Origin: Pocillopora damicornis
Lineage: Eukaryota
Direction: 5' to 3'
DNA length: 64,000 nt
Assembly (NCBI RefSeq): GCF_003704095.1
Contig: NW_020846801.1
Location: forward strand, 124,001 to 188,000
Part shown: positions 1-31,155 of the stretch, piece after piece
Numbering within the stretch: position 1 is the stretch's first letter
How the letters are laid out: every line of letters starts with the position of its first letter
Program-made: the position numbers and the translations under genes
Notes under the pieces: generated by a model
Told to the model about the DNA's origin: nothing
Databases searched by the model: none
Seen by the model: only the letters and a program-made list of their open reading frames with translations

Positions 1-2307
1 ACAAAGAAAAATGGCGCTGAGGAACGTACTCCTCCGAAGAGCAAAATTCCGTCCTCAAATAAATCCCAAATACCCACAACAGGACGTAAGGAGGGCGCTT
101 TGCAGAAAGACAAGACAGGAGGCAAAATATCATCATCAGCAACATCCTCACACAACAGACCTGATTCTGCTAAAGAAAATAAAGATCCTACAAGTGCACC
201 AAATGGTCATGAACCTGCCAAGCAAGTCAGTAAAATTCCGTCTTTTTCCAAGTCTGGTATTCCCAAGTCTAGAATACCCTCCGTGACTCGCAAAGACAGC
301 CAGAATGAAGGGCAGGTGGCGCAGAATGGAGGAGAGGCACATTCTCCTGTTACTGGTACCCAAAGTAAGATACCCAATGCATCTTCCTCCCCTCAGGGGA
401 GCGGCATTCCTATGGGTGTCAGCCGCATTCCATCCTTTACTAAATCACCGTCAGCATCCCCTGGAACTAAAATACCCCAATCAAAACTTTCCACTGTGGT
501 AGGATCCAAAGCTACAGAACCGGATGGACCCCCCGGGAACTCGTCATGCACTCCAACAACCCCTTCCACACCGTCCGATACGACCCCCGAGACAAAGGTT
601 CCTACAGCAGGAGGGTCCAAGATTCCAGAACCTAAAATCGCCGCTAAGTCTCCATCAAGTTCCCTTCCAATCGCATCGAAGACAAGTGGGATTCCGAAGT
701 CTGGCGAATCGACACCATCCAGCAAGATTCCAGGTCATGCTGGCGACAAATTAACGCGTAAAACCTCAAGCGCAGAGAAAGAAACCGTGCCTACAGGTAA
801 TCCTACAGCGGCGTCTTCGCCCGTGGAGAGCAAAATTCCTTCGTTCCCGAAGCATGCAGCCACGCAAAAGTCCGTGGGGAACTTACCCAATGGACACGAG
901 CAGGTTGCCTCTAAGCCCAGAACAGGAATACCAACTTTTGGTGGTAGGCAGCCTTCTTTCGACAAGGAGCCTGCTACCCCTCCCAGTACTCCAATACGAG
1001 AAAACTTCTCTTCAGAATCGCCACTGGATAAGTACATTTTCTCCGAGGCGAGGAAAATGGAACAAATATTTCGCGATGAGCCCATTGAAGTGGTTGTACC
1101 GGCCGCAGATTTGGAGGAGGACGAGGAATTTTTGAGACAAGAAAAAGAAATCGAGGAACTTGAAGAGAACTCGCATGACTCGGAGCTGCAGATGCTGGAT
1201 TCAAAAGAAGCAGAGGATTTAATCAGTGAAGTGTTGAAAAGTTATGCTCCCGACATCAACACAGAAAACCAACTAGAACTGGATGATAGTTACGTTTTCT
1301 CCGTGAAGGATGACAACAAAAACTTTAAAGAGAAGGTCAATATTGATGACATTGTTCTTAAACCCGCCAGCAACGAAAATGAGTCACCAAATGAGACGAA
1401 AATTGTGGAAAAACCGTCAACGAAAGAAGATGTAGACGATGGGAAAGCCAAACTTGGTATCAAAGATTTAATGGCTGGAAAAGATGTTGTCCAAATTGGC
1501 GCAGATGTCACAGAGGAAGCAACTAAAAACAAGGAAAAGGAAACTGCCATATTGGAGAACAAGAAAAAGACACCAGATTTGAAAATTTTAATGCCAACTG
1601 AAAAGGTTGTTGAAAGACAAGTTGACGAAAAGACTGAGAAAGAGGCAACAAAGAACGAAGGACCCGCGATTGACACATTGGGTGAGTACGCTCAGCATGC
1701 CAGGCGCTCGCGCAGTCGACAACGAAAAATTGTAAGTCCTGATTCAGAAGAACCTGGGTTTGTTTCAGAACCTGAGAAGGAAGTTGAAAAAGAACCTGAA
1801 AAACCGAACGAAACAGAGAACATCAAAGAGCCACCCAAAAAGGACATCAACAAAGACAAATTCGGAAAAGCTCCGTTTGAAAGCGAGAAGAAACCTAAAG
1901 TTGAAGCCTCAAAAACGACAAAATCGAAATCAAAGAACGACAAGCCGAAGTTCCTGATTGAATCGTCGCTCGGGAAAGATTTTTACGCCTCTCGGAAATC
2001 GAATGAGAGTGTCGAATCACGAGATAGTGTTCATGATGATGTCGTGAAATCTTCGTTCAAACCCGAACTTTCCGCGCTCGTGTTTGAAAATAAAATCGTG
2101 GAAGAAACGTACACATTAAAACAGAAAGAATCACCGGTTGAAGAAGCCGTTAGCTTAGAGGAGGCAGAGTTTGAAGACGTTGATTTGCTGTCGGAGAAAA
2201 GCTTGAAGAATGAAAGGCGAGAAATAACACGGAGTGTTGACGAACTTGACGAAAAAACTGTAAAATGCATGGGATGTGGACGAGGTGGAAAGTGTTCCAT
2301 TATGTAG
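1..2307 (+). CDS. 5'-partial disordered protein with SxIP array and C-terminal CaaX (ORF1)
   Basis: Frame 1 is open from base 1 (TKKNGAEERTPPKSKIP...), so the track's TTG start at 100 is not the real start. It has 15 [ST]x[IL]P motifs in 40-933, an acidic/Lys-rich central region, and ends KCMGCGRGGKCSIM* (TAG 2305-2307). Confidence 0.85.
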   Translation, partial: TKKNGAEERTPPKSKIPSSNKSQIPTTGRKEGALQKDKTGGKISSSATSSHNRPDSAKENKDPTSAPNGHEPAKQVSKIPSFSKSGIPKSRIPSVTRKDSQNEGQVAQNGGEAHSPVTGTQSKIPNASSSPQGSGIPMGVSRIPSFTKSPSASPGTKIPQSKLSTVVGSKATEPDGPPGNSSCTPTTPSTPSDTTPETKVPTAGGSKIPEPKIAAKSPSSSLPIASKTSGIPKSGESTPSSKIPGHAGDKLTRKTSSAEKETVPTGNPTAASSPVESKIPSFPKHAATQKSVGNLPNGHEQVASKPRTGIPTFGGRQPSFDKEPATPPSTPIRENFSSESPLDKYIFSEARKMEQIFRDEPIEVVVPAADLEEDEEFLRQEKEIEELEENSHDSELQMLDSKEAEDLISEVLKSYAPDINTENQLELDDSYVFSVKDDNKNFKEKVNIDDIVLKPASNENESPNETKIVEKPSTKEDVDDGKAKLGIKDLMAGKDVVQIGADVTEEATKNKEKETAILENKKKTPDLKILMPTEKVVERQVDEKTEKEATKNEGPAIDTLGEYAQHARRSRSRQRKIVSPDSEEPGFVSEPEKEVEKEPEKPNETENIKEPPKKDINKDKFGKAPFESEKKPKVEASKTTKSKSKNDKPKFLIESSLGKDFYASRKSNESVESRDSVHDDVVKSSFKPELSALVFENKIVEETYTLKQKESPVEEAVSLEEAEFEDVDLLSEKSLKNERREITRSVDELDEKTVKCMGCGRGGKCSIM

Positions 2308-3055
2308 TTGAAACAATAGCTAGGAATTCTGGGGTTATTTTCGATTTCATCGTTCAATTAGTATTAAAATGAGTAACCGCCATGCATTTCAAGTGTCATC
2401 TCTTTTAAAAGAAAACTTAGTTGTATCCCTTCGTGCCGGTGTTTGAAAGAAACCGGGTTTGAGTGAATTTGTAATGAAAATTTGCTATTAAAAACTATGT
2501 AATCGTACTTTTGTGTCACTTTCTGAACTTGTGAACAACTTTTAAAAATTCGCCTGGCGTTTGAAGAATTCAAGGTTTTGTTGGTCGGGTGTTCCCGGAC
2601 AATGCCACCTTCTACGTTAACGTGAGAGAACTGGGCAAGAGATTAGGTTTAGTTTCTGAATGGGTTAAATCTCCTTTGCAGACGGTTTTAGACACGTCAC
2701 GCAACGCTACTTGAACCGAGCAAAAGCGATGAAAACCATCAAAATCTTATAATGGATATTGCACCGTCCTGTCACCTGTCGTCTAGTTCTTAATCGAGGG
2801 TTTTGTTGTGAGAGTTGAGCTGACTTCATCCCTGAAAAAAATTTATTTATTGTTATGATGACATAAACCTTGGTATGTCTGGTATTTGAGGTTCGAAGTT
2901 TTAGTGCTAACTCGCAAAGAGACTTTGATGGTTGGTTCTTCGGGAAATCAAATGCAACCAAAGCTACGATTTCAGAGCAAATTTACGTTCTGTTATGAAA
3001 TGCGTGATCGGAAGGTTTTTGCGTGACATCTGCGTGATCACATCCGTGACCTAAC

Positions 3056-3064
3056 TCACGTGAC
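3056..3064. promoter_or_regulatory. CLEAR-type E-box TCACGTGAC upstream of ORF2
   Basis: Direct match about 280 bp upstream of ATG 3343, within a patch of several (G/C)CGTGA half-sites (3001-3070). Confidence 0.4.
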
Positions 3065-3342
3065 GTGTAAGCGTCAAAACGAGGCTAAAGGCAACTTATG
3101 CTTCGACATAGAGAACGCAAATCGCTTCGAGGAGTAAGATTTGAGATCAATCTCTTCTTTGAAAAGTTTTAGAGAGCTGTAGTGGGCAGTATTTTGAATC
3201 AAGAAAAAACTTTCCCTGAAGTTTTTTAAGCATTAAGAACGAACAGATAGTAAAAGTGCCGTACAGAAAGGCGAGGAACAAGTCGTGACGCGATTACGCT
3301 CGAACATTGGTGTGTTGTACTGATCTGAGATAAAGTATATAT

Positions 3343-3720
3343 ATGGCAGCAAGTGGATCAGAAACGCAAACTATCGAAAACGTTGATCTTAAAGTTGATG
3401 ATAATCCAGATGAGGATCATATCGATATCGAAATAAAACAAGTTACAGAAGAAACAACTCCATTAAAAGCTGATAGTAACGATGAGGAACTGGAATTTGG
3501 ATTTGGAAGAGACGAGCCAGTCTTTATCACAGATCAGGATGTTGCCGATTATTCGGAATCGTCGATGGAAAGATCAACAGAACTTTCAGCAGACGCCAAA
3601 AAGGCATACGAAGAATGGATCTATGTAGACATGAACAAGACTACCCACGAAGTGAACGAGAACTTGCTTCTTTTGAGTTCAGTTTATGGAAAAGATCAAG
3701 TATGTTGTTGTGTTATGTGA
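3343..3720 (+). CDS. 125-aa acidic protein with LIR-like EEWIYV and CCaX terminus (ORF2)
   Basis: ATG preceded by an in-frame TAA (3331-3333). Strongly acidic. Contains EPVFITD, EEWIYVD and ENLLLL, and ends QVCCCVM*. Confidence 0.75.
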   Translation: MAASGSETQTIENVDLKVDDNPDEDHIDIEIKQVTEETTPLKADSNDEELEFGFGRDEPVFITDQDVADYSESSMERSTELSADAKKAYEEWIYVDMNKTTHEVNENLLLLSSVYGKDQVCCCVM

Positions 3721-4687
3721 ACTAGAAGAAGCATTAATTTATTTCTTGATCAAGTAAATCCACGGAAGGTTCCTTGATTTCCATCGTTTAGATTGCAAAA
3801 CGTAGAAGTTGTGAAAAAGCGGTATGAGATATATTAATTTATTTCATTTCAAAATGACCTCAAATGTCAAGAAAATGAAAGTAGATACTAAAGTTGCGTC
3901 ATACATGGGAATTGGGCCAGAGAAAGCCTTGTATATCTTTTATTAGCGAGAGAAAGTAGAGAAATTGTAATAGGTACATTTACTATTATAAATAAGTACT
4001 TGCTCTTTAGATAGATTGTCAAGCAAACTCTCTAGGTTTTGTAAAAGAGGGCAAAGACTGGATAGATAAAGATCTTATGTTAACAACTGCTCCATTGTTG
4101 TTCCTATACAAAGCATGTGACAGTACTCGAGAATTGGTTGCGCTAATGCTTAAAGCACATTTGATATCCGAAAGGGGAGGTATTAAATCCTTTGAGGATT
4201 TCAATTAGGCAATAGGCTTATGACACAATTATTGGCTAGCTAGTTTCATGGAAAACACATGATTTTACTTGTAACCTAATAGTACAGTTAGCCCTATTAA
4301 ATAAGTTTTCCTCAGGGTACTTACTAGTTTATTTTATTAACTGAGACCAGTACTTCAAGTGACTAAATGATTGGTTTATTAGAGGTGCATAAAATTCAAT
4401 TATAATTTTCAAACCAAATAAAGAGCAATATCATGATGAGAGATAGGAGTGGCTCTGGTCACTTTAGTTACTGGGATTCCCTGTGCTTTTAAAGAAATAC
4501 CATCATTTTTTTAGTGAAAATTCTAAATATGTTGTAAGTATTTGAGTTTGTCTGAAAAATTATTCCCTCTACTGGTTTTGCTTGTGACTTGAATGCACCC
4601 ATCCTAAAACAACTGCCAGAACTATTTATGTAGAATTTCCAAGAGGGTACAATTTTCTATCACAAGGGAAATGTCAATTCTGCTCAA

Positions 4688-4890
4688 TTAACCCTTTGAC
4701 TCCCAAGATCTGATCATTAACTCTCTCCTCTTGCTTCTATACCTTTCCTTGTGAATTGGTTACAAGAATTTGGTGTTCCATCAAGATACTATCTTGTACT
4801 TGATAAGTTTGAGTAATCTCACTACCTGTTTACTGGATAATGTTTGGATACTATAGGAAGATGTTTATCATTTCTGGGAGTTAAAGGGTT
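4688..4890. mobile_element. piggyBac-type MITE (TTAA-CCCTT...AAGGG-TT)
   Basis: Termini ttaaccctttgactcccaag / ctgggagttaaagggtt are inverted repeats. Related elements or ends occur at ~5367-5553, ~7657-7860, ~39565-39779 and 62310-62328. Confidence 0.6.
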
Positions 4891-5366
4891 TGATAATCAT
4901 GTTTAAGTTGGAAAGTATAAATCATATCTCCTTTGCAGCTTCATCTGCACCAGGGATATAAAATTATTATTTGATTACTGATTGTACCAGGGACATCGCT
5001 AGCCACCAAAAAGAAACATCCGCTTTGTCTAAGTTTTTGAAGGAACTAAAACTTTAGTTTTATTATGTACAGCATCAAGTGTTATTGATTTCCACCTCCA
5101 GTGACCTAATTAGGCAATAAATATCAGCGGCCTGATAAAATTAAGAAAAGTTTGTTCAAAATTGATCAAATTGTGTTACTAAGATAGTTATCTGAACCCT
5201 GATATGGAAGTTATGGTGGTTTTAGGGAAGACTTTAGTAAAATTATTATGTCTGTAGCAAGAAACCAAACCAGTAATAGACTTTGATATTCTGTAACCTT
5301 TTTTGACAATAACTTTAAACTGTGTTGTGTTCATTGAAGTTACATTATTCACACCACTCTGTGCCT

Positions 5367-5553
5367 TAACCCTGTAACCCCTAAGAGTGAGCATCTAATT
5401 TCTCTTTACAGTATCACCCCTGAGTCACAAGGATAAAATGAAATGAGAAAAGAGGCTCATGATTGTTAAACAAATTCTTCTTGTCAACACTTAGGAAATG
5501 TAAAGAGAACAGTATGGAGACTATGCATACTGATGTCAAGTTGTAAAAGGATA
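5367..5553 (+). mobile_element. MITE copy (TTAACCCT family)
   Basis: Clearly similar to 7657-7860 (aatttctc..tacagtatcacccctga...gaacagtatggaga...tgcatactgatgt). Confidence 0.55.
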
Positions 5554-5713
5554 ACTATACACACCAAGAGACAGTTGTATTCACACACCCTGTGCTGCAA
5601 GAGTTTATATTTTGCCCTCAAGGTAAATGTGGAAAAAGTGCATTTTTAAAATATTTTCCATCATTATAATATAGGAATTTTTGCACTTTCTTATCCTTGC
5701 AGAATGGAATAAA

Positions 5714-5840
5714 AGGAGGGGTACATGAGGGGGTATGGGAGGGGGGTAGGGGAGGAGTGAGTAGGGGAGGAGGTAGGGGAGGAGGGTAGGAAAGGACAGG
5801 GCACAAGAGGGGAATAGCAGAGAGAACTTGTTGAGGGGGA
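5714..5840 (+). repeat. G-rich polypurine tract (G-quadruplex/triplex-prone)
   Basis: Repeated (TA)GGGGAGGAG units with many G3+ runs. Confidence 0.6.
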
Positions 5841-7656
5841 TGTTATCACTCCAAATAATTAGCATACCAAATCTTAGGGGTTTTCTGCCACGTGCACAAT
5901 TAAGTGTAGGCTGTCAAGTTCATTCGTCAGTATTTTAGGTACTTCCGTTAAAATATCGTGAAATTACGAGAACCTTATCATCAGTTAACATTCCATTGAC
6001 AATATTGACTTTAAAGTTGGGTTAAATTACGTTTCACGAGCTGAACTGAAGTTACAGATGAATAGAAAGCTCTCTTTTATCCTTTTTCGTTTTGGTATTT
6101 CTTTCTTCTTTTATCCCGAAGACGTTAGCCTTGACTTTCTTGTCAACCGAAGAAGCCTTGTGATATCAGGTCCGTCAGCAACGCGCACGTTACACTTGTG
6201 GTATGTGGTTGTGATAAAATTTTACGCGCGCGACACTCACTCGGGTAAAGTTCAGTTCCTGTTTATACCCGAGGTTATCGATTCACTCTCTAAGTAATTG
6301 AACGAATTCGTAGTCGACCTTCGTTGTCTAAACGGAATTCCATAGGAAGAAATGGTAAGTACAGTGAAAAATTTGAAAAATATCTGTGCTTTTAATTTGA
6401 CTTAGAAGTGATAGGCGTACCAAATGTAAACAAATGAATTTAGTCACGAGTAAGTCACGAGTAAGAAACGAAGAGAAAGGGAATCAGTACGTATTTTTAT
6501 CCTCCACTCATGAATAAGAAACAAGGAAGTGAAATTAGCAATAAGGTGTTGCAGTGAAAGATGTAAGACTGTTGCTTCAGATGATTCAGAGATCGTGAGC
6601 TAAATTAAAGAAATCCGCCAACATTGCATCAGGCCGCCACTAATAGCAGTATACTTTTCACATCAGAAATATCTGCCCAAGCCGTCTCGTACAGGTACGC
6701 TTATCTCTTTCCATATATTAATCTTTGAAAATCTTGCGTATCCTTCTTCGAAAAAGAGTCGTTTACTCAGAAGTATTTCGTTGTAACGAACGCATATTTA
6801 ATATGGTTTCCAGTCCAAACTTCGCGACCTTTCACGTGTTAAACTTCAATTCAAACTTCGCGACAGGAAGTCCAACTTGTGTTTTGAATTTTAAGAGTGA
6901 AAACTTTCGAAAAAAATAGCATTTTGCATCAGTTTAGCAATACTTGATTGAGAGCATTTTGTTTTTTTTTTATTCTAGCTCTAACCCTGAAGCAGAAATT
7001 TCTTCAGTTTTACGTTGTGTACAATACCGAACTTGAAAGACCTTTACCTTGCAAATTAAATTACTGATCGACTTTTAATGACTCGGAATTTGTCCTCCAA
7101 ATTTAGTTATGGAAACGATTGTTTGATAATATTCTTCCCTACTTCAGAGTAGTGTTAACTTTTATTTTGCTATTATATAAACTGTCTGTAACATTGATAC
7201 ATCATTGAATAAGTATTTTTATAACGGAGACATTCAGGTGGGCGATCACGCGACCATCATCAATTTGACACCTCTCAAGATCTCCTTGTTATGGTTGAAG
7301 GCTTGAGAATTTGGCGCTCAGTCAAAATATATTACCTCTTTAATCTTCGCATTGCCTTCTGCTCGAGATTTTATTGAAATTGAAATAATTTCCCAGCGGT
7401 CCTTAATCTGATCTTGACGAAATATTGCCGATGTTCTTCGCCCCTAAAATTGGTTTACACTAGCCGTCACTGACGCAATTCCTTAATTCTTTCCTGCCAA
7501 GAAAAATTCTAAATGGGTTCATGAAAACAATACATTTTCATGTACATAGTATTCAAGTCGCCGCAAAGTTTTATTCGATCTATATGTCGTCCTCTCCCGA
7601 TGTGAAAATATAATTTGTGTAAAAAAAGTCAGCAATAGGAAAGCACCAGTAAGAGC

Positions 7657-7860
7657 TTTAACCCCTCAGAGTGACTAACATCCAATTTCTCCTTACAATA
7701 TCACCCCTGACTCAAACATTAAGGTCGCGAGAATAATGGAAATGATCGTCGATTACAGAAGCTGTTGATTGTTAGGCAAATTCTCCTTGTCAGCACCTTA
7801 GGAAATATGAATGGAACAGTATGGAGAATATGCATACTGATGTTAGGGTGTAGAACGGGA
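7657..7860 (+). mobile_element. MITE copy (TTAACCCT family)
   Basis: Similar to 5367-5553, and in reverse orientation to 39565-39779. Confidence 0.55.
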
Positions 7861-8591
7861 AGCGACATGAGTTGTCATATGAGCTAAAATTAGCTTGAAA
7901 TTGGTTACCATCCTCTAACTCATGATGTCTCTTAAATCGCAAGATCCTTGAGAGAAAAATCGATTGGAGGCGTTGAAACAATTTGACGTGTCTAAGTGCA
8001 AATAAGTGGCAACCGGTTTGATATTCACAGGAGGAGGATTATCAATAGTTATAAAACGACTGGTAGTTTGCACCTTCTCATTAAAGGTTTTTCCTTCCTC
8101 TTTTATTGGTTATCTCAAATCTCTCACTGGCTTGTAACATTAGCGTCGTTTTTCGGTGTTTTCGTTTCGATCCTCGCGAGAAGCGGGAAGGGGATGTAGG
8201 AAAGGAGAAGGCGGAGGCCTAGGCTCAATAGCCTCATAGAGGCTGGTAGTCAATTGCTACTAAAATTTTTATTAGTTTTTGTCCTGTTCTCTTTTGTCTC
8301 TCTGATTACAAGCATCTTTCAATCCAACAGTTCGATAAAAAGAGCAGTTCTGCTTCTACATCACCCAAACCAGGCGGTAAATGCGAACATTTGAGAACCA
8401 AATTAGATTAGAACATTTCGTTTGCAATTCCAATGGGAATAACCACGAACAATGTAATCAGCAATGAAAAGAAGCACATTGATTTTTCATTTTCTTTGCT
8501 GCTATTTTTGACTTACATTACACGTTGTTATTCCAAGCGACTGAATCTGCATTTTAATCTGTTTTCATTTTCTTGAAGGTTTCCGCAAGTA

Positions 8592-9200
8592 ATGACTAAA
8601 CACCAGTTGCCATTCGGCGATCTAAACAACTCTCACTGCGACTGTTCAGCAACCCCTAGTTGTCAGTTGGAGTGGAATCATAACTTCCACGAGGATCAAA
8701 CCACCGTTTTGAGAACTAATGGCTCAGACGAGGGGTTAATTACTGAAATAAAAACTCGGACAACGCACGATTTGATTCCGGTGGAAATCACACAGCTGCA
8801 CACTGACAAACATCCAAAGATTAAAACCCCAAACGGAGATTTTGAATATGTAAATCTTAATCTTCATTTCTGGGAAAGAACGAAATCGGACGGCATCAGA
8901 CACAAAATGGAGAAATACAAACCGAACTGCTATTATGGAAAGACACAGGACACAAGCGACGAAAACCCAGCTAGTTCTAAAAGCGCCGATGCTTGCCGCG
9001 GATCGGTTCCAAATCCAGTTCATAGTGTCTGTGGGGTAGCTGAGAGTTCAGTATTTTTCTCATCAATCGGAGAATGGACAATAGTTGATCTCAATCTTCG
9101 AGATTTTGAGAAGGAAGATGCGAAACGAACACTTTATTTAAGAAGGAAATGCACACCTTACAAAGAAGTTGAACCGGAGAGTTTTTGCCTTATTCTCTGA
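8592..9200 (+). CDS. 202-aa protein with LIR-like motifs and geranylgeranyl-type CaaX (ORF3)
   Basis: Ends PESFCLIL*. Contains DFEYVNL, IPVEIT and GEWTIVDL. A good splice acceptor (ttttcattttcttgaag, AG 8577-8578) lies just upstream in an open frame, so this is probably a terminal exon. Confidence 0.7.
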   Translation: MTKHQLPFGDLNNSHCDCSATPSCQLEWNHNFHEDQTTVLRTNGSDEGLITEIKTRTTHDLIPVEITQLHTDKHPKIKTPNGDFEYVNLNLHFWERTKSDGIRHKMEKYKPNCYYGKTQDTSDENPASSKSADACRGSVPNPVHSVCGVAESSVFFSSIGEWTIVDLNLRDFEKEDAKRTLYLRRKCTPYKEVEPESFCLIL

Positions 9201-11829
9201 ACAACTTCAAGAAAGGATGGTTGAAGGGAAATCCATCAATTACAGAGGAGTATTACGAAACTATTTTGAACAAACACTCTCAGATACGAAGCGTATTTCG
9301 TACTGAGAAATAATGAAACATAATAGCATTGTTAAGTTTATTTTTATTTAGAAATTAACTGTAGGATCAGTCGAAAATGAAAGATCGCTTGTTCCTTTTT
9401 AAGCATTTTCGTAATAGGTTCATTTTGAGAATTTTGAGCGAACAAAAGTTGTTACAAAACGCGCAATCACTTTGTAACTTAGTTCAAATTGCTTTTTTTT
9501 TCCAAAAGCGTAAGATATGTTTACATTTTAACAAAAGTCAAACTTTCAAGAAGGAATTTTGAGGAATGTGAATTTGTCATAATAATGTACTTTCTATAAA
9601 AATCTAGAGGTCAGCTTTACAAATACAGTACAACTGAGTTTGCTTTCCCCTGAGTTGCATTCCAAAAGATGACTGGAAGTCATCTGAGATGGATGTAATC
9701 AAAAGCCTGCGTGACAGAAAATATATAAAAAAACAATAGCAAAATAAACAACACCTGTATCTTTCAATGAGCGTTTCTGTGTAGTTCACGCAATCATTTA
9801 TCTCCGCATTGAATGCAACTAAAGGAGTTCGAAGATCGGCAGACTGATGAGTAAGCCTAACGAACGAGTAGGCAGGCAAGGAATAGACTACGAATTGATG
9901 AGCAAATAAATGAACGAAATAGGGATCGTACGGATACATAGGAAGAACAACGAAAAAACCTCGTCTTGTCACGATTTCCCGCTCTTTTTCAAACACGATT
10001 TGAAGGCGCCTATGGCGTAAATGAACAAGAGTTTCTACAACTTCATGTTAGCAAAGCGAGTACGAAAATTTCGTTCCAAGAAATACTTGTCCCTTTTTTT
10101 TTCTTTTCTTTTTTGATGAGCGATGAGCAATTTATACTCAGCGATACTACACACAAAAACGTCTTATAAGTTATTATCCAAATGCTTATTTCATGTGCAT
10201 GTCTTAGAAAGGGGAAAAAGCGAAGCACATGGAAAAGCGTAGCGCGCGCAGCCGACTGGTTAAACAGGTTTTTCTACAATGCAATATATCTCAGGATGTT
10301 TGTACTCGATTCAAGCGTTTTTTTCTTACTCTGCTTTGTGCAGTTGAATAATAATAACATACCGCTTTATATATCGCAGTTGGATAATAATAGCATATAT
10401 CGCTTTATCAAAACTCGATTTATGTGGGAGACTCTAAATACACTAAAGATAGCGCCCAAATCGCACTGCTAACAGCGTACAAAAGCTACAATTGACAATC
10501 AATCGCAAGGTCGGCAGAGAAAAAACACAGTTATAGCTCAAGATTTAAGGAGTCTTGGGCACGTTTCCAATCATGTGCATGTTGTTTCTGTTCGGAGAGG
10601 CGGGAAAGGGGGAGGACGCTAATTAAAATTGCAGGCCATCTATGCACGTTCCCCATAGCTGAATTCGACCCTGTTTCCGGCGAAGGAATGGAATGGTCAC
10701 GATAACAGTTGGCGGTGGACCAATGATGAAGCATTCATTTATCTAAACATCCGAGATTAGGTACAGCCGCATATTATGCAATGGTCCAAACGAATATTTT
10801 ATAAAGGTCAACGCATTATTTATGATCGGACTCGAGCTTGTCGCGTGCCTACCTCGCGTTTCCCATCGTACTTGAACGTCCCATCGTTTCAAAGGTTTAA
10901 CCGCTACGTAAATATTCTGACTTAATCTCCAAGCATTCTCAAGAAAGCTAAAAAATTTATTCTCTCATATATACGTTGAACTCAGACAAAAAAAAAAGTC
11001 CAAGGTAAAAGAGTATGGAACTTCATGAAGACGACTGCGTTTTTATTTTTTCTGAGTTCGAGTTATGACAAGCATTTACCTCAACACCTGAAACATTCTC
11101 GGGTCATTTTCAAGGGTCATGTTCCAACCGAAACTTCTGGTTGAGCTTTATCACGGAATATTTACATAATCTATTTTGACTTCGGTTCTTTGGACCCTCT
11201 CGTCAAAATACAGATTCTCCTTACGTCTCATCATATATTGATGGTGGTGTTGGTTGCAAGAATGTACTCTAAATCCTTACTACACTCTCTTGACCTGAAA
11301 TTTTTTCTTTTTTGACCGATACTGTCAAAAAAAAAATGGTGACAGCGGCTTAAAACACTGTAACACAATCTTGGTTACTTTTTTTATTGCAACGAAAGAA
11401 AAAACTCATAATAAAACCTAACTTCAATAAAATTTCTGCCACTAACGTGACGCTCTGTTTGTACAAGGTTAAGGCTCCATGTGAATTTTTTCTTTGCCTA
11501 CAAAGGGTTTCAGTGCATTTCTCATGCAATCGGATTGTACGCCATGGGAGAAATGTAATCTTAGGAACTACGTACGACCAACAAGGAGATAATTCTGTAT
11601 TTTACCTTTCAGCGAACAATGTTCAATTTATTTTCATATTAAAGTTCAATTGACAAATTCGTTACGACAACAAACTATGTGAACTTTGATCGAGACTGCC
11701 GAATCTAAACGAAGCAATTGTTTCACTTGTCGTATGTTTGTCCAATCAACGTGCTCCACTGGTGAGCGGCACGCTTATTTGTAATGCATTGCATCAGTAA
11801 GGGAATTAGCACGTTTGAACTCATTCTGC

Positions 11830-11836
11830 TATATAA
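11830..11836 (+). promoter_or_regulatory. TATA-like box upstream of ORF4
   Basis: TATATAA about 75 bp before ATG 11906, with CCAAT at ~11742. A competing splice acceptor (ttgtag, G at 11891) also exists. Confidence 0.35.
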
Positions 11837-11905
11837 GGACGAATACATAAATTCTTGCTACCAAAGTTCATCTGTTTTTATGTCATTGTAGCTATTCAAG
11901 TGAAC

Positions 11906-12940
11906 ATGGCAGAGAGCTTTTCCGTTAAGCGAGGCCTTGCTGGAATGTTTCATTGGAAAAGTGATAAAAAGGGAGACGAAACTTCGAAAGAAGAGGTTTC
12001 TGAACCAGAAATTCCTAAAGAAGAAACTCCACAACCAGAAACTTCAAAATTAGAAATTCCTGAACAAGAAACTCCTGAACAAGAAACTCTTAAACCAGAT
12101 AAGAAGAAGAATGGACACAGACGACATCGCTCGCTCGTCACCGCTAGCGAGTTGCCAATTCCAAGTTCTGGCGATGAACTAACAGAAGATGAACAAACGA
12201 AAACTCTGGAGGACGAAAAGGAAAAGTCTAAGAGCCGATTCCGACGTAGTCTGACATTCAGACGATCAAAGAAGAAGAAGAAACAACGACAAGAAGAAAA
12301 AGAAAAGCAGGAGCCTCTGCCGATAGAGATCCTTCTAACCCCACCAGTAGTGGACAACCTGAACGCCGAGGAAATTGTTCCACAGCTAGTCAGTCAAGAC
12401 GATGGAAGCCCTGATGTTGGAGTAGAAGGAGTCATAGACGCCATGGGCGAAAACATCGCAGTCCCAGATGTTTCCACAGAAATCCAAGAGATTCAAAGTG
12501 TAGTTTCTGACAAAATCGAACCCGACGGGGACGAATTAATGGAAGTGATCAAGAAAGTTGAGAGTCTCCAGAACCTACAAGACAAGATTGGCGTGCCCTC
12601 AACCGGAACCTACCTAGAAGTGCACGCGATGTTCAAAGGTCTTGGATTAAACACCGACAATTTTCTTCTGGCCAGCTCAATTTCTTCCCTTCTTCAGTAC
12701 GAAATGTCCGTGTGTGCCTATGGTTTTGGCCTTGTAAAACTAGACGTTCTTTGGAATTCCCTGCTGAATCGTGCGCAACAAGCAAAAGAAGCCACAAGAC
12801 AAGTTCTGGTGTATTTCATTAGGCCTTTGATCAAGAAATACCCCCACTACTTCATAACTGCGATTAAACAACGAAAAATGATCGAAAAGGCTCAAAAGAA
12901 GATCGAAGCGGCAAAACCGATTGAAGAGACACTGTTGTGA
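11906..12940 (+). CDS. ~344-aa scaffold-like protein: 5-aa repeats, polybasic motif, PIEILLT, helical C-terminal region, PDZ ligand (ORF4)
   Basis: First ATG in good context (aacATGG) at 11906. Contains E[TI]PEQ-type repeats, SRFRRSLTFRRSKKKKK and PIEILLT, and ends IEETLL*. Confidence 0.8.
   Translation: MAESFSVKRGLAGMFHWKSDKKGDETSKEEVSEPEIPKEETPQPETSKLEIPEQETPEQETLKPDKKKNGHRRHRSLVTASELPIPSSGDELTEDEQTKTLEDEKEKSKSRFRRSLTFRRSKKKKKQRQEEKEKQEPLPIEILLTPPVVDNLNAEEIVPQLVSQDDGSPDVGVEGVIDAMGENIAVPDVSTEIQEIQSVVSDKIEPDGDELMEVIKKVESLQNLQDKIGVPSTGTYLEVHAMFKGLGLNTDNFLLASSISSLLQYEMSVCAYGFGLVKLDVLWNSLLNRAQQAKEATRQVLVYFIRPLIKKYPHYFITAIKQRKMIEKAQKKIEAAKPIEETLL
12003..12100 (+). repeat. 15-bp coding tandem repeat (~6 units, E[TI]PEQ-like)
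   Basis: Units such as aacaagaaactcctg and aaccagaaattccta. Confidence 0.7.
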
Positions 12941-15475
12941 GCAGTAACAAACTTTGAAGAGGGCAGTTTGCGTAGCTCACTTGAATTACAAGAATCTGAC
13001 ATATGAACTGCCATCACGAGCTTAAAAAAAAACGTTTGAGGATTGTGGACATGATCAAAGAACGATGGCTAATTTTTTTTTATTCTATTTTCATTTCAAC
13101 CGCTCAAGAACCTTACTGCTGCCTTTTTTACATATCACATTTTAAAATAAGCTGGTCGTTTTGAAGCTGTTTTAACATTTTCCTCATTACGTAACTGATC
13201 AAGTCACCATGCTATCATGAGTTCCCTTTAACTCTAAAGAAATCAAATCAAGTTATATAACTGAAAAATCCTCGGCATTGACTGTGCGGCGGATGATGGA
13301 CCCACCGCTTTGCATTTTAACAGTTTTCAGTTCTTTGGCATTGCCTTAGAAATCTATCTTTTCGAAATAGTTTATTTCGAAAAAAAAAATAATCGTATCG
13401 CTGAAACGTTTTGTTAAGATTTCAGAAAATATGAATTATTTCATTCAACACTGTGATCAGAAGAAATACGCATAGCCGATGCAATTTGTTCAGTTCGGAG
13501 TTTCTAAGCTCTAGGAGGATATTGCGAGCGAGAGTTTTTTTTTTATTAATTTTTTTAAAGTCATTTCACTGTCATATGATTTCTCCAAATTTTGTAACGC
13601 TCCAAATATTCGGAACTTTAGAAAATGTTTAGGGTTGTAAAGAAACGTAGATGGTTTAATTTGAGAAGAGTTCAAATGTGTTTAATTTTAAAAGCATCGT
13701 TTGAACAAAAATATTTTGGTGAAAAAAAGGCGATTTAAATTTATAGTTCGTTCCGTCTTTTTATTATGTACCAGATTTAGGGAACCAGCAAAAATATTTA
13801 TTTTATAGATTTCAAAATGCATTTTTATTCTTTTGATTTCGAGGGAAGGCTGGTTTATCTGTAAAAAAAATAACAAGATATTAAACGAATATCAAAACAA
13901 ATGCCTTTCAGTCTGTGCGAGTCTGAGATTTCTTAAACAGGAAAAATTGGGCCTGTGGAGTTTTGGACGTTTTCGCTCGAGAGTACTTGACGGAACGTGT
14001 CCTCACTTCATTGTTTAAGCAGAACTTTATGAAAGAGATGTCAGAAAATCATCGTAGCCCTTGAGGGGATCAGCTACCACGCTGTTTTTTCAACCACTGA
14101 AAAAAAAACAAATCCTTTTTACCAAATTCAAGATAGCTATAATTGTAGATTAATTTGAATGTCCTGCTTTCCGTTAGCTTAAGCTTTTTTTCTTCACTCG
14201 CATTGTTGAAGCTGTTTAGCTATGGCACATAAAATTCAGTTTACTCTTTTATCATGGATGGAAAAAATATGTCTCCTCGAAAAAACGGGTTCGACATTCA
14301 TGGGGTAAATGAATAATCGATTGATTGCACCCATAAATAGACCTGTTCGTTGAACTTTAGTCCCCCGAACTTGACCGCCGCGTTTAGTATGAAATAAGTG
14401 AACTGAGACTAGATGAAACAACCGAGAATGACTCCCAAAGCCTTATCAGCAATGTGCCCATTGCGTGCGTTACACTTCACAAGTCGTGAAAAATTGAGCC
14501 TCAATATTTCAGTCGGAAATTTGCAATCTGTACCAATATTTTTCATTCTTAATCACCCTCATGCCTTCATTTCGGTGTTTCCTATCTCAGTTAGCAAACT
14601 AATATTTTAAGCGCGTTTTCCTTCACATTCAATTAAGTTAGCTCGTGGCTACAGATTAGCATGACGTAGTAACCTTTATTAAACTCACATGAGAGTCATA
14701 AGAGAGTCATTTTAAGCTCGACCTTTACTTCGTTTACTTATTGAATCCTCATATACTTCCAAAAAAGGAGCGAGTAAAAGAAAAGTTTATTCTTATCAGG
14801 AACAAACGCATTCTTCTACGGCAAAATATTTTAGGGAATGATGAAATGTTTTTGCCGTTCGCAAGAACCTTCTCTATTGATTAAGAGCGTGCATGTAAAA
14901 TTCTCGAACCGCAACTTAATATAGCGAGGACCAAGTAAAGGATGCAAACAACTGTTCGTGTATTGATCGCTATCGAGAGGGAAACGTTTCGATGAAATAG
15001 CGCTGAAAAAACAGCTTAAAACACGCTCCGTCAAAATGAAGGCTAAGGGAAGTCCACTGTTAAGACAAAAAGCGTTATTTTGAGGTAATTTTTGTGGCTA
15101 ACAGTTTTAAACGGAAAAAGACAAATGAAAATTATATTCGAGGCATCAGAATGAGTGTTGATCTAGTTGTTCACGTTCTTTTCACATGTAAATCACATAT
15201 AAGCTCGTGACACTGCTTACGTGTTTAAAGCACTGCGCTAATTTTTACACCTTGCCAACATGTGGCAGAAAGTTTACGACTTTAAAATTATTCTGATTGG
15301 CTACTAACACTGTAGAACTAACTATATACCCTTTTCCTCTAAACCATAAAATTCGGCTAAACAATCTCAGCGATAAAAGAAAAACGCACATTGCCTAGAT
15401 TGACGACGCGAAAAACTCGATGCCAAGCTGATAAAGCTCTCGTACAAAACACTCGTTAATTTCACGTGCATATGC

Positions 15476-15485
15476 GTCACGTGAC
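15476..15485. promoter_or_regulatory. Perfect CLEAR element GTCACGTGAC upstream of ORF5
   Basis: Exact 10-bp palindrome ~125 bp before ATG 15610, with a second E-box (TCACGTG) at 15462-15468. Confidence 0.45.
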
Positions 15486-15609
15486 TGTCCCTGTGACGAT
15501 CATTGGACAGATTTGATATCTCTCTTTCAGTTAAAATAATTCTAATCATTTCTGTTAAGACAAGTTTGTAACGCAAGCGTTAGGATCTTTCTTAAATTTC
15601 GTATTTAAA

Positions 15610-18333
15610 ATGGCAGAGAGTTCGCAAACAAGTGGAATCGACAAGCAGCTTTTCGGCGCCAAAGACGAACCCGGCCGAAAATCGACGCCAGAAACGCAGG
15701 GCGGAGAAGAGGCAACAAAAGCACAATCTAATGGACGTTTGGAGAGCGGGTTTAAAGGTCAGGAAAGTTCTTATTTTGTTCCCGACAAAAAAAATACTGT
15801 CGATAATTCTGAGATGAATACGGCAGGAAAAGGAGAAATCTTTGCGGAGAAAAAAGCAAGTGAAACGGCAACTGACCGAGAAGAAAGCGCCTCACAGGAC
15901 AGCAAGAAAATCGCAACGACAAAGGAAACAGCTAAAGAAAGTACGAACAAAGAAAGCCAAGGTGAACAGGAGACACAAAGAACTCAAGAGTTAAAGAGCA
16001 ATGAAAAACAAACCCTCAAACCTGATCAAACCAACAGCACCAAAAAGGGGAGATTAAGTTTTCGCCGCTCTAAGAAAGGTAAAATTTCCAAACGCAAAGC
16101 CTCACTCGATGAAGAAAAACGTGTTGAAATTTTGAAATGTGAAACTATCGCAGAGGATCCGAAGATCTTCGAGGAGAAGACGGATGAGATTTGTGACAAA
16201 CGAGCGGATAAAGCTGACGAAGCGAAATTCGAGACTGTTGAAGGTTCGGTGGAGATGGAAAACAGAGAACCGTTTACTTCTCCCGAGGGAGTCCAAAACG
16301 AAAAGTCCACAGCGACGAACAACAAAGGAATGAATATAAAGCAATTTGCAAGTTTCCGTCAAACCACAAAAGGCAAGTACAATGTCAGCCAGACCTTTAA
16401 CACTGACGCATGCGAAGGCCATGGGGAGCGATCTGAAAAATTCGAGAGCCCTGAAGATCGTCAGGATATGGACGTGGAGGAGACTTCGCTCAAACTACCT
16501 GTTGCTGCTGACAAAGGTGAATCGAATGAGAAAGATGATGAGAGAGAAGAAAAAGCGGACCTTAGGAAGAAAGAGACTGGTAAGCAGAAGAAAAAAGTGA
16601 CGGTTCTAAGCTTCAAGCGCAACAAACAAAGTCTTAAAAAACCAAAAGGAAAATCAAGTAAAAAAGACGAAGAAAAAAGTGAAATTAACGCGAGCGCTAA
16701 AATTGGTGTGGGCAAAGAAACTAATGACGTCAACCTTATGGATGGCGGTGCACTACGCAAGCAAGCCGACTGTGAAGAGAAAATTTCAAACAACCGAGAA
16801 GAACGCAAATCGATTGTAGCGGAGGAAGAAGATGCAACAGCAGAGGAGAAATCGGGCTCTGTTGAAGAGAAACAGGGTAATTCTCTCGAAAACGAAGAGA
16901 GCAACGCAGAAAAGGAAGACGGCTCCGCAAAGGCGCATGAAGTGACAACGGAACTTTCACTGAAGAAAAAGAAGAAAGAGAATATTTTGCGTCGTTCATT
17001 GAGGAAGTTTACGAATCCAAGTTCTGTTCCACATGGGAAGAAAAAAACGAAAGGGGATGAAAAAACTGTAAACGCAGATAAGGGAGCCAGAAAGAGGAAT
17101 GAGGAGGAAGACAAGAGTGAATGTTCTGGATTGGAGGAAAGTGTTGAAGAACAAAGTGTCGCCCAAAAAGATACTGAAGAAAAATCGACCGAATGCGAAG
17201 AAAATTCTAAAGCAGTAAAGAGAAAGAAAGAGTTAACAGATAGCAATCGAGAGTTGAAAAGGCAGAGGGAAGATCATGAAATTGAGATCCAAGACAAAGA
17301 TGCGCTCGGAGAAACAGCTGATGTTGTTGTGGTTGTTGAAGTAAAGCAAGACGCAAAAACATCTGAAGTAAAATCAAACGTGGCAGACGATTTAGAGAAT
17401 GGGACAACAAAAGAGCGCAATCGAGAGAAAGAAAATAGCGCTGATGAGTTGAACTGTGAAGGAAACAAAGAGTTGTCGCCACAAAAGAACAAAACCGATG
17501 AACAGGAGGAAGTCAAAGCTGACGTTGAAATTTCTCAAGAGATTATTGCACGCGAAGCTAAACAAATTGAAACATCTGCTGAAGGTCTAGGAGGGCGTGT
17601 AGTCGAAGTACGAGTTGTTATTGACGAACAGGCGAAGAAAAATAAAGAAGAAGAAACTAAGGCTGAAGAAACCAAAGGCAGCAGCGACGAGGGGAATACC
17701 TTCACCGAAATCCAAAGGCAGACAAGTGAAACTAAATCTGAAAGTCGCCACCGCCATCTTGACGGATACGACTCGGATCTTACAGTGGTCACTGCTTTGG
17801 CCTATCCGTTTACCGAAGACGATGAATTGTCAGAAAGCGACACATCGGGAACCGATGCAAATACCGAAGATGACGAAATACAAGCCATTGCCGAGGTACA
17901 CGTAATACCTCCGGAAATTGAGACATCTGGAGTAGAAGGGCTGATGGAAACTACTACCGACCCCGATACCGAAGACGAAGAAGTACGAGTTATTAACGAA
18001 GGAGTGTCTTCGGATACGGGGGTATTACGAGACGGAAACGAAGGCAATGCGAAACTAGTTCCTGGGGGTGAACACGAAGTGGACACCCCTACCCAAAGCA
18101 ATGAATTGGAAAATACATTGACGGCAGAGGAAGAGCCCGCCATACGCGAAGAACAAAATTCACGGAATGGAAGTACTGCGCAGAGTTTACAAAGTTCATT
18201 TCAGAATCCTGCAGAAGAATGGATCATGGTACATCGGCTCGACGTGACTGAAGAGATTGCACTTCGTCTTATGACCGTACTCCCTCGGATCTGTAAGCTG
18301 AGGAGGAATGTATCATGCTGTACGGTCATGTGA
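15610..18333 (+). CDS. 907-aa Glu/Lys-rich disordered protein with polybasic motifs, LIR-like EEWIMV and CaaX (ORF5)
   Basis: Uninterrupted 2.7-kb ORF starting aaaATGG. Contains LSFRRSKK, FASFRQ, LSFKRNK and LRRSLRKF, and ends ICKLRRNVSCCTVM*. AATAAA at ~18370 and ~18769. Confidence 0.88.
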   Translation: MAESSQTSGIDKQLFGAKDEPGRKSTPETQGGEEATKAQSNGRLESGFKGQESSYFVPDKKNTVDNSEMNTAGKGEIFAEKKASETATDREESASQDSKKIATTKETAKESTNKESQGEQETQRTQELKSNEKQTLKPDQTNSTKKGRLSFRRSKKGKISKRKASLDEEKRVEILKCETIAEDPKIFEEKTDEICDKRADKADEAKFETVEGSVEMENREPFTSPEGVQNEKSTATNNKGMNIKQFASFRQTTKGKYNVSQTFNTDACEGHGERSEKFESPEDRQDMDVEETSLKLPVAADKGESNEKDDEREEKADLRKKETGKQKKKVTVLSFKRNKQSLKKPKGKSSKKDEEKSEINASAKIGVGKETNDVNLMDGGALRKQADCEEKISNNREERKSIVAEEEDATAEEKSGSVEEKQGNSLENEESNAEKEDGSAKAHEVTTELSLKKKKKENILRRSLRKFTNPSSVPHGKKKTKGDEKTVNADKGARKRNEEEDKSECSGLEESVEEQSVAQKDTEEKSTECEENSKAVKRKKELTDSNRELKRQREDHEIEIQDKDALGETADVVVVVEVKQDAKTSEVKSNVADDLENGTTKERNREKENSADELNCEGNKELSPQKNKTDEQEEVKADVEISQEIIAREAKQIETSAEGLGGRVVEVRVVIDEQAKKNKEEETKAEETKGSSDEGNTFTEIQRQTSETKSESRHRHLDGYDSDLTVVTALAYPFTEDDELSESDTSGTDANTEDDEIQAIAEVHVIPPEIETSGVEGLMETTTDPDTEDEEVRVINEGVSSDTGVLRDGNEGNAKLVPGGEHEVDTPTQSNELENTLTAEEEPAIREEQNSRNGSTAQSLQSSFQNPAEEWIMVHRLDVTEEIALRLMTVLPRICKLRRNVSCCTVM

Positions 18334-30114: not shown

Positions 30115-30991
30115 GTGAGTATTTAAGAACGGAGTTTAAGTTGTGCTTTCTTGTGTTGCAGTTAAGGCTATCGTTTCTNNNNNNNNNNNNNNNNNNNNNN
30201 NNNNNNNNNNNNNNNNNNNNNNNNNNNNNNNNNNNNNNNNNNNNNNNNNNNNNNNNNNNNNNNNNNNNNNNNNNNNNNNNNNNNNNNNNNNNNNNNNNNN
30301 NNNNNNNNNNNNNNNNNNNNNNNNNNNNNNNNNNNNNNNNNNNNNNNNNNNNNNNNNNNNNNNNNNNNNNNNNNNNNNNNNNNNNNNNNNNNNNNNNNNN
30401 NNNNNNNNNNNNNNNNNNNNNNNNNNNNNNNNNNNNNNNNNNNNNNNNNNNNNNNNNNNNNNNNNNNNNNNNNNNNNNNNNNNNNNNNNNNNNNNNNNNN
30501 NNNNNNNNNNNNNNNNNNNNNNNNNNNNNNNNNNNNNNNNNNNNNNNNNNNNNNNNNNNNNNNNNNNNNNNNNNNNNNNNNNNNNNNNNNNNNNNNNNNN
30601 NNNNNNNNNNNNNNNNNNNNNNNNNNNNNNNNNNNNNNNNNNNNNNNNNNNNNNNNNNNNNNNNNNNNNNNNNNNNNNNNNNNNNNNNNNNNNNNNNNNN
30701 NNNNNNNNNNNNNNNNNNNNNNNNNNNNNNNNNNNNNNNNNNNNNNNNNNNNNNNNNNNNNNNNNNNNNNNNNNNNNNNNNNNNNNNNNNNNNNNNNNNN
30801 NNNNNNNNNNNNNNNNNNNNNNNNNNNNNNNNNNNNNNNNNNNNNNNNNNNNNNNNNNNNNNNNNNNNNNNNNNNNNNNNNNNNNNNNNNNNNNNNNNNN
30901 NNNNNNNNNNNNNNNNNNNNNNNNNNNNNNNNNNNNNNNNNNNNNNNNNNNNNNNNNNNNNNNNNNNNNNNNNNNNNNNNNNNNNNNNNNN

Positions 30992-31155
30992 GACCCTTGA
31001 GACTTTTGCTGTAAGTATTCAGTTCTTCTTAAAAAATCTTATTGAGTTCTTCATGTTACTAAAACAATTAATATTCCTTGCAGACTTTTTAAAGTGAAAA
31101 AAAGATACCGTGACTTGTTTGAGACAATAGGTGTCTTGTTACCTCGAATGGCCAG
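30992..31155 (+). CDS. TPCN1: TPCN1 copy B, IIS4 and S4-S5 linker exons (inverted contig)
   Basis: 30992-31010 (RPLRLL, partial) and 31084-31155 ([23 protein letters not shown]). Confidence 0.8.

Follow-up and report, generated by a model that had tools for sequence, protein, structure and literature searches.

A conserved anthozoan cluster of disordered proteins with predicted prenyl anchors and an acidic-aromatic motif that may dock ATG8/GABARAP

Introduction

To our knowledge, the selective-autophagy receptors described so far are soluble proteins or are held in membranes by transmembrane or reticulon segments. Here we describe a cluster of genes in the coral Pocillopora damicornis whose products may form a different sort of membrane-held adaptor. 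The cluster lies in a window of 64,000 nucleotides, positions 124001-188000 of contig NW_020846801.1 in the 234-Mb, 4393-contig assembly GCF_003704095.1, and consists of five long open reading frames (ORF1 to ORF5) on the plus strand that occupy the first 18.3 kb; coordinates below are those of the window. Four of the five end in a CaaX signal, with an acidic-aromatic motif that resembles the LC3-interacting region (LIR) a short distance upstream. We conclude that this is a real and uncharacterised anthozoan cluster of disordered proteins, conserved and predicted to be prenyl-anchored. Its component features are all of known kinds. A search of the literature found no described class of proteins pairing a CaaX lipid anchor with an LIR, and no paper on proteins with both SxIP motifs and CaaX or on the Nematostella gene LOC5501108, a relative of ORF2.

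With respect to the motif, the closest described proteins are the interactors whose LIR has a helical extension, namely the giant ankyrins AnkB/AnkG, FAM134B and Atg40 (PMC7564214). The core (W/F)-(V/I)-X-V is the GABARAP-interaction motif (GIM), and extended LIRs carry an alpha-helical C-terminal stretch (PMC7564214). ORF2 and ORF5 have an acidic run that leads into this core, [W/F]-[V/I]-x-V, and ORF5 also has an acidic-amphipathic stretch (TEEI.R) after it. Those proteins, however, owe their anchorage to transmembrane or reticulon domains, or to spectrin and membrane partners, rather than to a CaaX lipid. The two groups are not homologous in sequence (no PDB sequence matched either the tail of ORF5 or the profile of the ORF2 family at E up to 10), and binding by the ORF products is a prediction.

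With respect to the anchor, a parallel is the vertebrate paralemmin (PALM) family, phosphoproteins that are largely disordered and anchored by prenyl and palmitoyl groups. Like the cluster, it has long, low-complexity cytosolic proteins with a C-terminal CaaX and, before it, a palmitoylatable Cys, and we take the ORF1 tail, ...LDEKTVKC.CGRGGKCSIM, to recall that of paralemmin. This is a resemblance and not membership, as Pfam PF03285 gives no match at E up to 1 and the paralemmin coiled-coil/Pal motif is not seen; nor do we know of LIR or SxIP arrays in paralemmins. ORF1 also resembles AMER2 (FAM123A) and other membrane-associated plus-end tracking proteins (+TIPs) of the SxIP type in having a predicted membrane anchor and many SxIP motifs in basic, Ser/Pro-rich disorder. 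AMER2 binds membranes through phosphoinositide-binding regions, however, and not through CaaX, and the Pfam family AMER (PF09422) does not match ORF1. Finally, the conserved LSF[KR]R-K-rich patches in the acidic disordered chains of ORF5 and ORF4 are like the effector patches of MARCKS and AKAP12, and presumably resemble phosphoinositide/calmodulin-binding effector domains; the likeness is compositional only, with no Pfam family match.

Results

Four of five reading frames share a C-terminal module

The five reading frames are as follows.

1..2307, plus strand: ORF1, the in-window part of a 1142-aa terminal coding exon (open frame traced)
3343..3720, plus strand: ORF2, a 125-aa acidic disordered protein (full-length orthologs)
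8592..9200, plus strand: ORF3, the terminal exon or ORF of a protein of ~200-245 aa (three other corals have an ortholog in this position)
11906..12940, plus strand: ORF4, the member without CaaX, helical in its C-terminal half and bearing a basic patch of the SFRRSKK type (syntenic ortholog ends ...ETLI)
15610..18333, plus strand: ORF5, a 907-aa disordered acidic protein (orthologs)

The motifs and tails of the four CaaX members are these.

2167..2187, plus strand: ORF1 motif EFEDVDL, an acidic F-x-D-V-D-L (ortholog alignment)
2263..2307, plus strand: ORF1 lipidation tail KCMGCGRGGKCSIM and stop, CaaX with two conserved upstream Cys (orthologs)
2293-2307, plus strand: ORF1 CSIM and stop, inside that tail
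3610..3633, plus strand: ORF2 motif EEWIYVDM; E, W and V invariant in 24 sequences
3703..3720, plus strand: ORF2 tail CCCVM and stop; CC invariant, X = M, Q or L in orthologs
9069..9092, plus strand: ORF3 motif GEWTIVDL; I-G-E-W-T, D and L invariant in 4 species
9186..9200, plus strand: ORF3 tail CLIL and stop, geranylgeranyl-type CaaX; C[LCSK]IL in 4/4 species
18214..18285, plus strand: ORF5 motif EEWIMVH, then the conserved stretch RLDVTEEIALRLMTVLP (ortholog alignment)
18214..18234, plus strand: ORF5 motif EEWIMVH alone (sequence check)
18316..18333, plus strand: ORF5 tail CCTVM and stop (orthologs)

An earlier note on this DNA, made from its letters, had reported four CaaX ends and four acidic motifs, and all of them lie where it put them: the CaaX stops are at 2307 (ORF1, CSIM), 3720 (ORF2, CCVM), 9200 (ORF3, CLIL) and 18333 (ORF5, CTVM), and the aromatic of the [W/F]xxV motif is residue 45, 34, 41 and 37, respectively, counted from the C-terminus. 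It was also right to leave out ORF4, which has no CaaX and whose ortholog likewise ends ...ETLI. ORF1 is longer than 735 aa, its frame being open past the left window edge. The exon of 1142 aa starts at contig position 122879, 1121 nt left of the window, and is preceded at a distance of ~2.4 kb, ~3.6 kb left of the window, by a short first coding exon (MASFWEKLAQP). The note had further seen an extra Cys upstream of each CaaX; such a residue is conserved in the ORF1, ORF2 and ORF5 families, and is not conserved near the CaaX in the 4 species of the ORF3 family.

Might the pairing of CaaX and motif be fortuitous? The whole window has 370 stop-to-stop segments of >=50 aa; no more than 8 satisfy even a loose CaaX pattern, and among those 8 are the four CaaX ORFs, which are long plus-strand ORFs of the region. 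When each protein was shuffled, 0.4-1.9% of its trials placed [DE][WF]xxV at a distance of 25-50 residues from the C-terminus, a rate for a pattern chosen post hoc, after the data had been inspected. From these two figures we take the co-occurrence to be above chance. The motif Trp is the sole Trp of ORF2, and likewise of the 907 residues of ORF5.

A CaaX signal has Cys at -4 and an aliphatic residue at a2, with X = M, Q, S or A directing farnesyltransferase and X = L directing geranylgeranyltransferase I. The four window tails follow this rule, as do those of the orthologs (CSIM/CAIM/CVIS for ORF1, C.[VIL][MQL] for ORF2, C.IL for ORF3 and CT[VI]M for ORF5). ORF1, ORF2 and ORF5 (X = M/Q) should therefore be farnesylated, with palmitoylation of the nearby Cys as a second anchor, and ORF3 (X = L) should be geranylgeranylated. 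In the ORF2 family X may be M, Q or L, and this switching suggests that prenylation as such is the trait under selection.

The modules are conserved in corals and, for ORF1 and ORF2, in anemones

Each of the four CaaX members belongs to a family in which the end of the protein is better preserved than the remainder: conservation is 0.73-0.84 over the last 50 residues against 0.57-0.69 elsewhere. The nearest orthologs of the window's genes are those of stony corals. Within the families the aromatic, the V/I at +3 and the CaaX Cys are invariant or nearly so, as is the extra Cys, except in ORF3. The earlier note had proposed asking whether orthologs keep motif and CaaX while the rest drifts, and they do, with [WF]xx[VI] as the form of the motif that is kept.

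The ORF1 family has 45 relatives of ~700-1200 aa, the orthologs being of ~1020-1200 aa, from corals and from the anemones Nematostella, Actinia and Actinostola, auto-named 'titin-like'. The ORF1 protein is disordered, at first Ser/Pro/Lys-rich and then acidic, and the family shares two conserved blocks, F-x-D-[VI]-[DE]-L and LDEKTVKC.CGRGGKC[SA]IM. All 43 models that end in CxxX end in CSIM, CAIM or CVIS, with the extra Cys in every one.

The ORF2 family has 32 relatives by word search, the full-length orthologs being 119-153 aa in corals and Nematostella; a protein of Oculina patagonica is 73% identical to ORF2. Searched exhaustively with the family profile, 1.84 billion representatives yielded no more than 11 small clusters of proteins of 44-172 aa (complete ones 123-172 aa), of which 8/8 inspected tails share the same ending and the sole named cluster is the uncharacterised Nematostella LOC5501108/A7T103. 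A profile search of the P. damicornis genome found no ORF2 paralog. In an alignment of 24 sequences the family invariants are K, E-W, V, L, S, V-Y and C-C. The AlphaFold2 (AF2) model built from that alignment has a mean predicted local distance difference test (pLDDT) value of 47.8 and no usable fold, so ORF2 is predicted to be disordered.

ORF5 orthologs of 907-1111 aa start with MAES and end in CCT[VI]M; they include a Stylophora pistillata RefSeq protein with 77% identity over the region compared. Four aligned sequences share EEWIMVH, D, TEEI and L without exception, a fifth, near-identical sequence has the same motif, and the family as a whole conserves EEWIMVH, D.TEEI and CCT.M. Basic LSF[KR]R patches, for example at 16054 and 16606, are also conserved in its acidic chain. 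The Atlas model of an ORF5 ortholog has a pLDDT of 0.37 and is predicted disordered, and a look-alike search of the Atlas with that ortholog gave no usable match. Oculina's ORF3 gene model has one additional short upstream exon and ends at the CaaX. ORF4 is weakly similar to ORF5, in the basic LSFRRSKK-type patch only, and its AF2 model is of low confidence (pLDDT 39.9), again with no usable fold. Pfam scans of the five ORFs and six orthologs found nothing meaningful, with hits at chance level to unrelated families only. The families are uncharacterised and, as far as searched (exhaustively for ORF2 only), restricted to Anthozoa.

The order of the genes is old as well. ORF1, ORF2 and ORF3 are adjacent in two further corals, one of which continues with orthologs of ORF4 and ORF5, so that the order of all five is conserved in another coral genus; in Nematostella the ORF2 ortholog directly follows the ORF1 ortholog on the same strand.

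Are the modules themselves kin? The earlier note had supposed that the proteins do not otherwise align and that one family had arisen by tandem duplication. On the first point, a hidden Markov model (HMM) of the ORF2 tail searched against the other tails and six-frame ORFs bore it out, with E of 0.08-4 for ORF5 and ORF3, which is not significant. Comparison of profile with profile qualifies it, as the ORF2 and ORF5 modules gave a single end-to-end match (P 4.9e-4, probability 32%), and GEWTIVDL... of ORF3 aligned with EEWIYVD... of ORF2 (P 7e-4), while the ORF3 and ORF5 modules showed no similarity to each other. On the second point, these weak matches make common descent of the ORF2, ORF3 and ORF5 modules plausible, if weakly supported; the ORF1 module shows no such similarity to that of ORF2, and ORF1 may be unrelated to the other three even though it has been ORF2's neighbour since corals and anemones split.

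What does the motif bind?

Lipid-anchored disordered proteins with a functional and conserved docking motif are very likely what this cluster encodes. The partner is a separate matter. The xLIR expression of iLIR has a core [WFY]xx[LIV] preceded by acidic residues, Ser or Thr (PMC5119064). It fits 56 of 89 models: 26/43 for ORF1, 21/37 for ORF2, 4/4 for ORF3 and 5/5 for ORF5. The GIM pattern [WF][VI]xV fits every model of ORF2 (37/37) and of ORF5 (5/5), and in ORF5 the motif is trailed by the conserved acidic-amphipathic stretch, as in alpha-helically extended LIRs. The earlier note's comparison of the motif with the ATG8-interacting pattern thus holds good. So does the setting: the motif columns are invariant, and ORF2 and the ORF5 ortholog are predicted to be disordered, which we count in favour because disorder is the usual setting of functional LIRs. 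ATG8/GABARAP is tentatively the single most likely partner; the CLEAR-type E-boxes and the SxIP array described below we also count in favour of the overall account.

Several points weigh against this choice. LIR-like patterns are degenerate, and xLIR is expected ~1.5e-3 times per position (PMC5119064). The window's own ORF2 (EEWIYV) and 16/37 ORF2 models miss the strict xLIR at one position, position 5 in the case of the window ORF2. The conserved block of ORF2 (LL..S[ST]VY) reaches well past an LIR, which the LIR reading leaves unexplained, and that of ORF3 is likewise too long. ORF1 and ORF2 lack profile-profile similarity, one ORF1 ortholog has Pro at +3 of the motif, and the invariant residues of ORF1 are F and the D two on, which a motif of the type called two phenylalanines in an acidic tract (FFAT) would fit too. 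Listed on the same side is a complex prediction, made without alignments, that paired residues 70-125 of ORF2 with a GABARAP-like protein encoded on a metatranscriptome contig (L041). It scored 0.11, below the mark of 0.34, carries no verdict and is evidence neither way on ATG8 binding. The coral's own ATG8 genes are all intron-split. A metagenome contig (L070) encodes a GABARAP that we judge to be human or mammalian.

Quite possibly the proteins are lipid-anchored and disordered as described, yet the motif docks some other partner, for example one in coat formation, sorting or scaffolding, by way of a clathrin-box-like or other beta-strand-addition interaction, or else acts close to the membrane, in concert with the anchor, as a structural or targeting element. 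Such an account would make sense of the ORF2 block, which runs for ~30 residues from K-x-[YF]-x-E-W to S-[ST]-V-Y, far beyond the LIR core, and of the ORF3 block VFFS.IGEWT..DL...FE.EDA.R..YLR. The short and fixed distance between motif and anchor, 34-45 residues, would suit it too, WIYVD recalls the L-phi-x-phi-[DE] of clathrin boxes as generally known, and the complex score lent ATG8 no support, although it is not evidence against binding. Against this account, no other class of motif fits all four proteins; ORF1, ORF3 and ORF5 depart from the clathrin box at positions 2 and 5. AF2 finds no folded mini-domain in ORF2, and most orthologs satisfy the LIR or GIM pattern.

ORF1 carries an SxIP array

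ORF1 has a second feature that sets it apart.

40..933, plus strand: ORF1 array of SxIP-type motifs ([ST]x[IL]P), 15 of them in the window and 2 just left of it

The two outside motifs lie within ~80 nt of the window edge. The total of 17 compares with 1.9 expected from shuffles, in which the maximum was 8, and in the ortholog alignment, which spans corals and anemones, several of the SKIPS/SRIPS columns do not vary. The region is 12-25% Ser and K/R-rich, in agreement with the sequence criterion for SxIP plus-end trackers. The array is a signature of +TIPs that bind end-binding (EB) proteins, and ORF1 would be predicted to bind EB; a prenyl-anchored plus-end tracker would in itself be unusual.

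Should ORF1 be treated apart from ORF2, ORF3 and ORF5? It could be a prenyl/palmitoyl-anchored plus-end protein whose E-F-x-D-[VI]-[DE]-L is an FFAT-like site for VAP, or another acidic-Phe motif, and which tethers membranes, endoplasmic reticulum and microtubule ends in the manner of AMER2 or of cortical +TIPs of the STIM1 type. The conserved array and the absence of profile similarity to the ORF2 module agree with this proposal, and AMER2 is the top named look-alike of ORF1 in a language-model feature search of the Atlas (score 0.76, a lead only). The FFAT core is an acidic tract followed by an E-F-[FY]-D-A-x-E-like sequence in which F2 and D4 are essential. By these rules, applied without a scoring matrix, ORF1 has the acidic tract and the two key residues, F and D, without exception, but position 5, normally Ala, is V/I, and position 3 is E/V. 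The residue at +3 is V/I in 14/15 aligned orthologs. Counting against the proposal, xLIR also fits 26 of the 43 ORF1 models, ORF1 has stayed beside ORF2 since corals and anemones split, and Pfam AMER finds nothing in it. We consider a separate identity of this kind improbable.

ORF1 and ORF2 are transcribed separately and retain their CaaX ends

Four RNA-seq runs, each from a different study, supplied the Logan contigs that were aligned to window positions 1-6000, which hold ORF1 and ORF2.

2308..2507, plus strand: ORF1 3' untranslated region (UTR) and poly(A) site (the RNA contigs of the four studies stop at 2439-2507)
3214..5390, plus strand: ORF2 transcript, unspliced, with a long 3' UTR and approximate ends (RNA contigs)

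Cover of ORF1 is continuous to 2439-2507, one contig entering a poly(A) run after 2507. Depth is near zero over ~2600-3200, between the two genes, so that ORF1 and ORF2 are judged to be separate mRNAs. The ORF2 contigs start at 3101-3250 and are colinear with the genome to ~4830-5390 with ORF2 intact, and no splice joint removing the CaaX of ORF1 or ORF2 is found in the RNA contigs. Two of the ways in which the earlier note thought it might fail, that the ORFs are untranscribed or the CaaX ends spliced away, are thereby disposed of for these two genes. An RNA-derived Oculina contig also holds an intact ORF2 ortholog, with splicing in its 3' UTR only. The gene models of Oculina, Orbicella, Stylophora, Nematostella and Actinia stop at the same CaaX, the ORF5 ortholog is a single-ORF RefSeq model ending CCTVM, and the ORF3 ortholog model ends at its CaaX too. 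As expressed, ORF1 and ORF2 do end at the CaaX. That the ORFs are instead chance or untranscribed frames, alternative terminal exons of one gene, or frames whose C-termini are spliced off is hardly credible: they do all lie on one strand within 18 kb, and the RNA contigs cover ORF1 and ORF2 only, but the separate mRNAs with retained stops and no joints, which exclude a single gene with alternative CaaX exons, the agreement of independent models from five genera and the strong purifying conservation all oppose it.

Just beyond the ORF2 transcript, at 5400-5600, RNA word depth leaps to 4,000-18,000 in 4/4 runs, and loose ends are numerous; the probable cause is a repeated element, or else a strongly expressed RNA that other loci or organisms have in common with this one.

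E-boxes at the ORF2 and ORF5 promoters

Two elements resembling those of the coordinated lysosomal expression and regulation (CLEAR) network precede genes of the cluster.

3055..3064, no strand assigned: CLEAR-like E-box CTCACGTGAC, directly 5' of the ORF2 transcript start
15476..15485, no strand assigned: GTCACGTGAC, a CLEAR-type palindrome perfect over 10 bp, 125 nt before the ATG of ORF5

Beside the ORF5 palindrome, at 15463, stands a further CACGTG. The E-box TCACGTGA occurs 5 times in the window (3056, 15477, 53566, 54518 and 54530) against 0.7 expected, and the Oculina ORF2 promoter has one ~23 nt before the transcript contig. These E-boxes are suggestive of control of ORF2 and ORF5 by MiT/TFE factors, without being specific for it. 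Counting against such control, the E-box is absent from the ORF2-promoter counterparts of another coral and of Nematostella, and factors outside MiT/TFE also bind it. The copies at 53566, 54518 and 54530, two of them 12 nt apart, are 1.1-2.1 kb upstream of an ORF at 55678-56064.

Other features of the cluster and the window

Some further features of the cluster proteins deserve mention. Residues 7-12 of ORF2 (window 3361-3378) are a family-conserved N-terminal E-T-Q-T-I-E, which presumably resembles the TQT motif for LC8/dynein light chain. At residues 58-66 (window ~3514-3540) the family conserves an acidic and then aliphatic run, [DE]x[VIL][VIL][VI][TSD]xxD, which to our eye looks like a SUMO-interaction or a second beta-addition motif. 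In ORF3 a second aromatic motif, D-[FS]-[EK]-[YF]-V-[NS]-L-[NH]-L, is found ~120 residues from the end (window 8850-8880) in 4/4 coral species.

Two candidate variants of the tails were considered and set aside. Some database models of ORF2 orthologs (e.g. P0002, P0026 and P0030) read through the stop, adding W and 6-24 residues past the CaaX. Since the window stop is TGA, we judge these to be gene calls, on short contigs, in which TGA was translated as Trp. A hidden CaaX of ORF4 was sought in the +1 frame across its stop (12927-12947), which reads polybasic ...KRLKRRSKRQNRLKRHCCEQ and stop, ...HCCEQ and stop. The syntenic ortholog ends ...ETLI in its normal frame, the same frame as ORF4, and for this reason the Cys-containing ending is judged a coincidence.

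Elsewhere in the window, a run of 1329 N at 30180-31000 is an assembly gap or masked stretch. Two plus-strand ORFs of 177 and 128 aa at 58745-62103 look by eye like exons of a gene of the D-isomer-specific 2-hydroxyacid dehydrogenase type.

Discussion

How might the products of such a cluster work together? C-terminal prenylation would tether the four disordered CaaX products to the cytosolic face of a membrane, ORF1, ORF2 and ORF5 through a farnesyl-type CaaX and a palmitoylatable Cys, and ORF3 through a geranylgeranyl-type CaaX. Some 30-40 residues before the anchor, each would display the acidic-aromatic motif [DE][WF]xx[VI][DH]. If the motif serves as an LIR/GIM docking site, it would couple the lipidated membrane surface to proteins of the ATG8 family. 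What the rest of each protein adds would vary: ORF1 would bring an SxIP array of the EB-binding type, and thereby microtubule plus ends, and ORF5 and ORF4 would contribute basic patches of a MARCKS/AKAP-like kind.

Taken in full, the proposal is that the cluster is a single ancient set of lineage-specific anthozoan adaptors for ATG8/GABARAP, receptors for selective autophagy or ATG8 trafficking held by lipid rather than by a transmembrane segment, partly under MiT/TFE (CLEAR) control, with ORF1 also capturing EB-decorated plus ends. As a whole the proposal is doubtful. Should the motif prove to bind ATG8, the cluster would provide the first such receptors to be held by a lipid.

What would this mean for the biology of corals? 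If the proposal is true, such adaptors could serve the turnover of plasma membrane, phagosomes or symbiosomes, and they would give a way, specific to cnidarians, into the biology of autophagy and of the phagosome, a subject at the heart of coral-algal symbiosis and of bleaching. Even if ATG8 is not the partner, nature offers in this cluster a clean case of disordered proteins that have kept only short motifs, namely CaaX, the aromatic motif, SxIP and basic patches, across roughly the divergence of corals and anemones, and it yields four compact, putative membrane-targeting tails.

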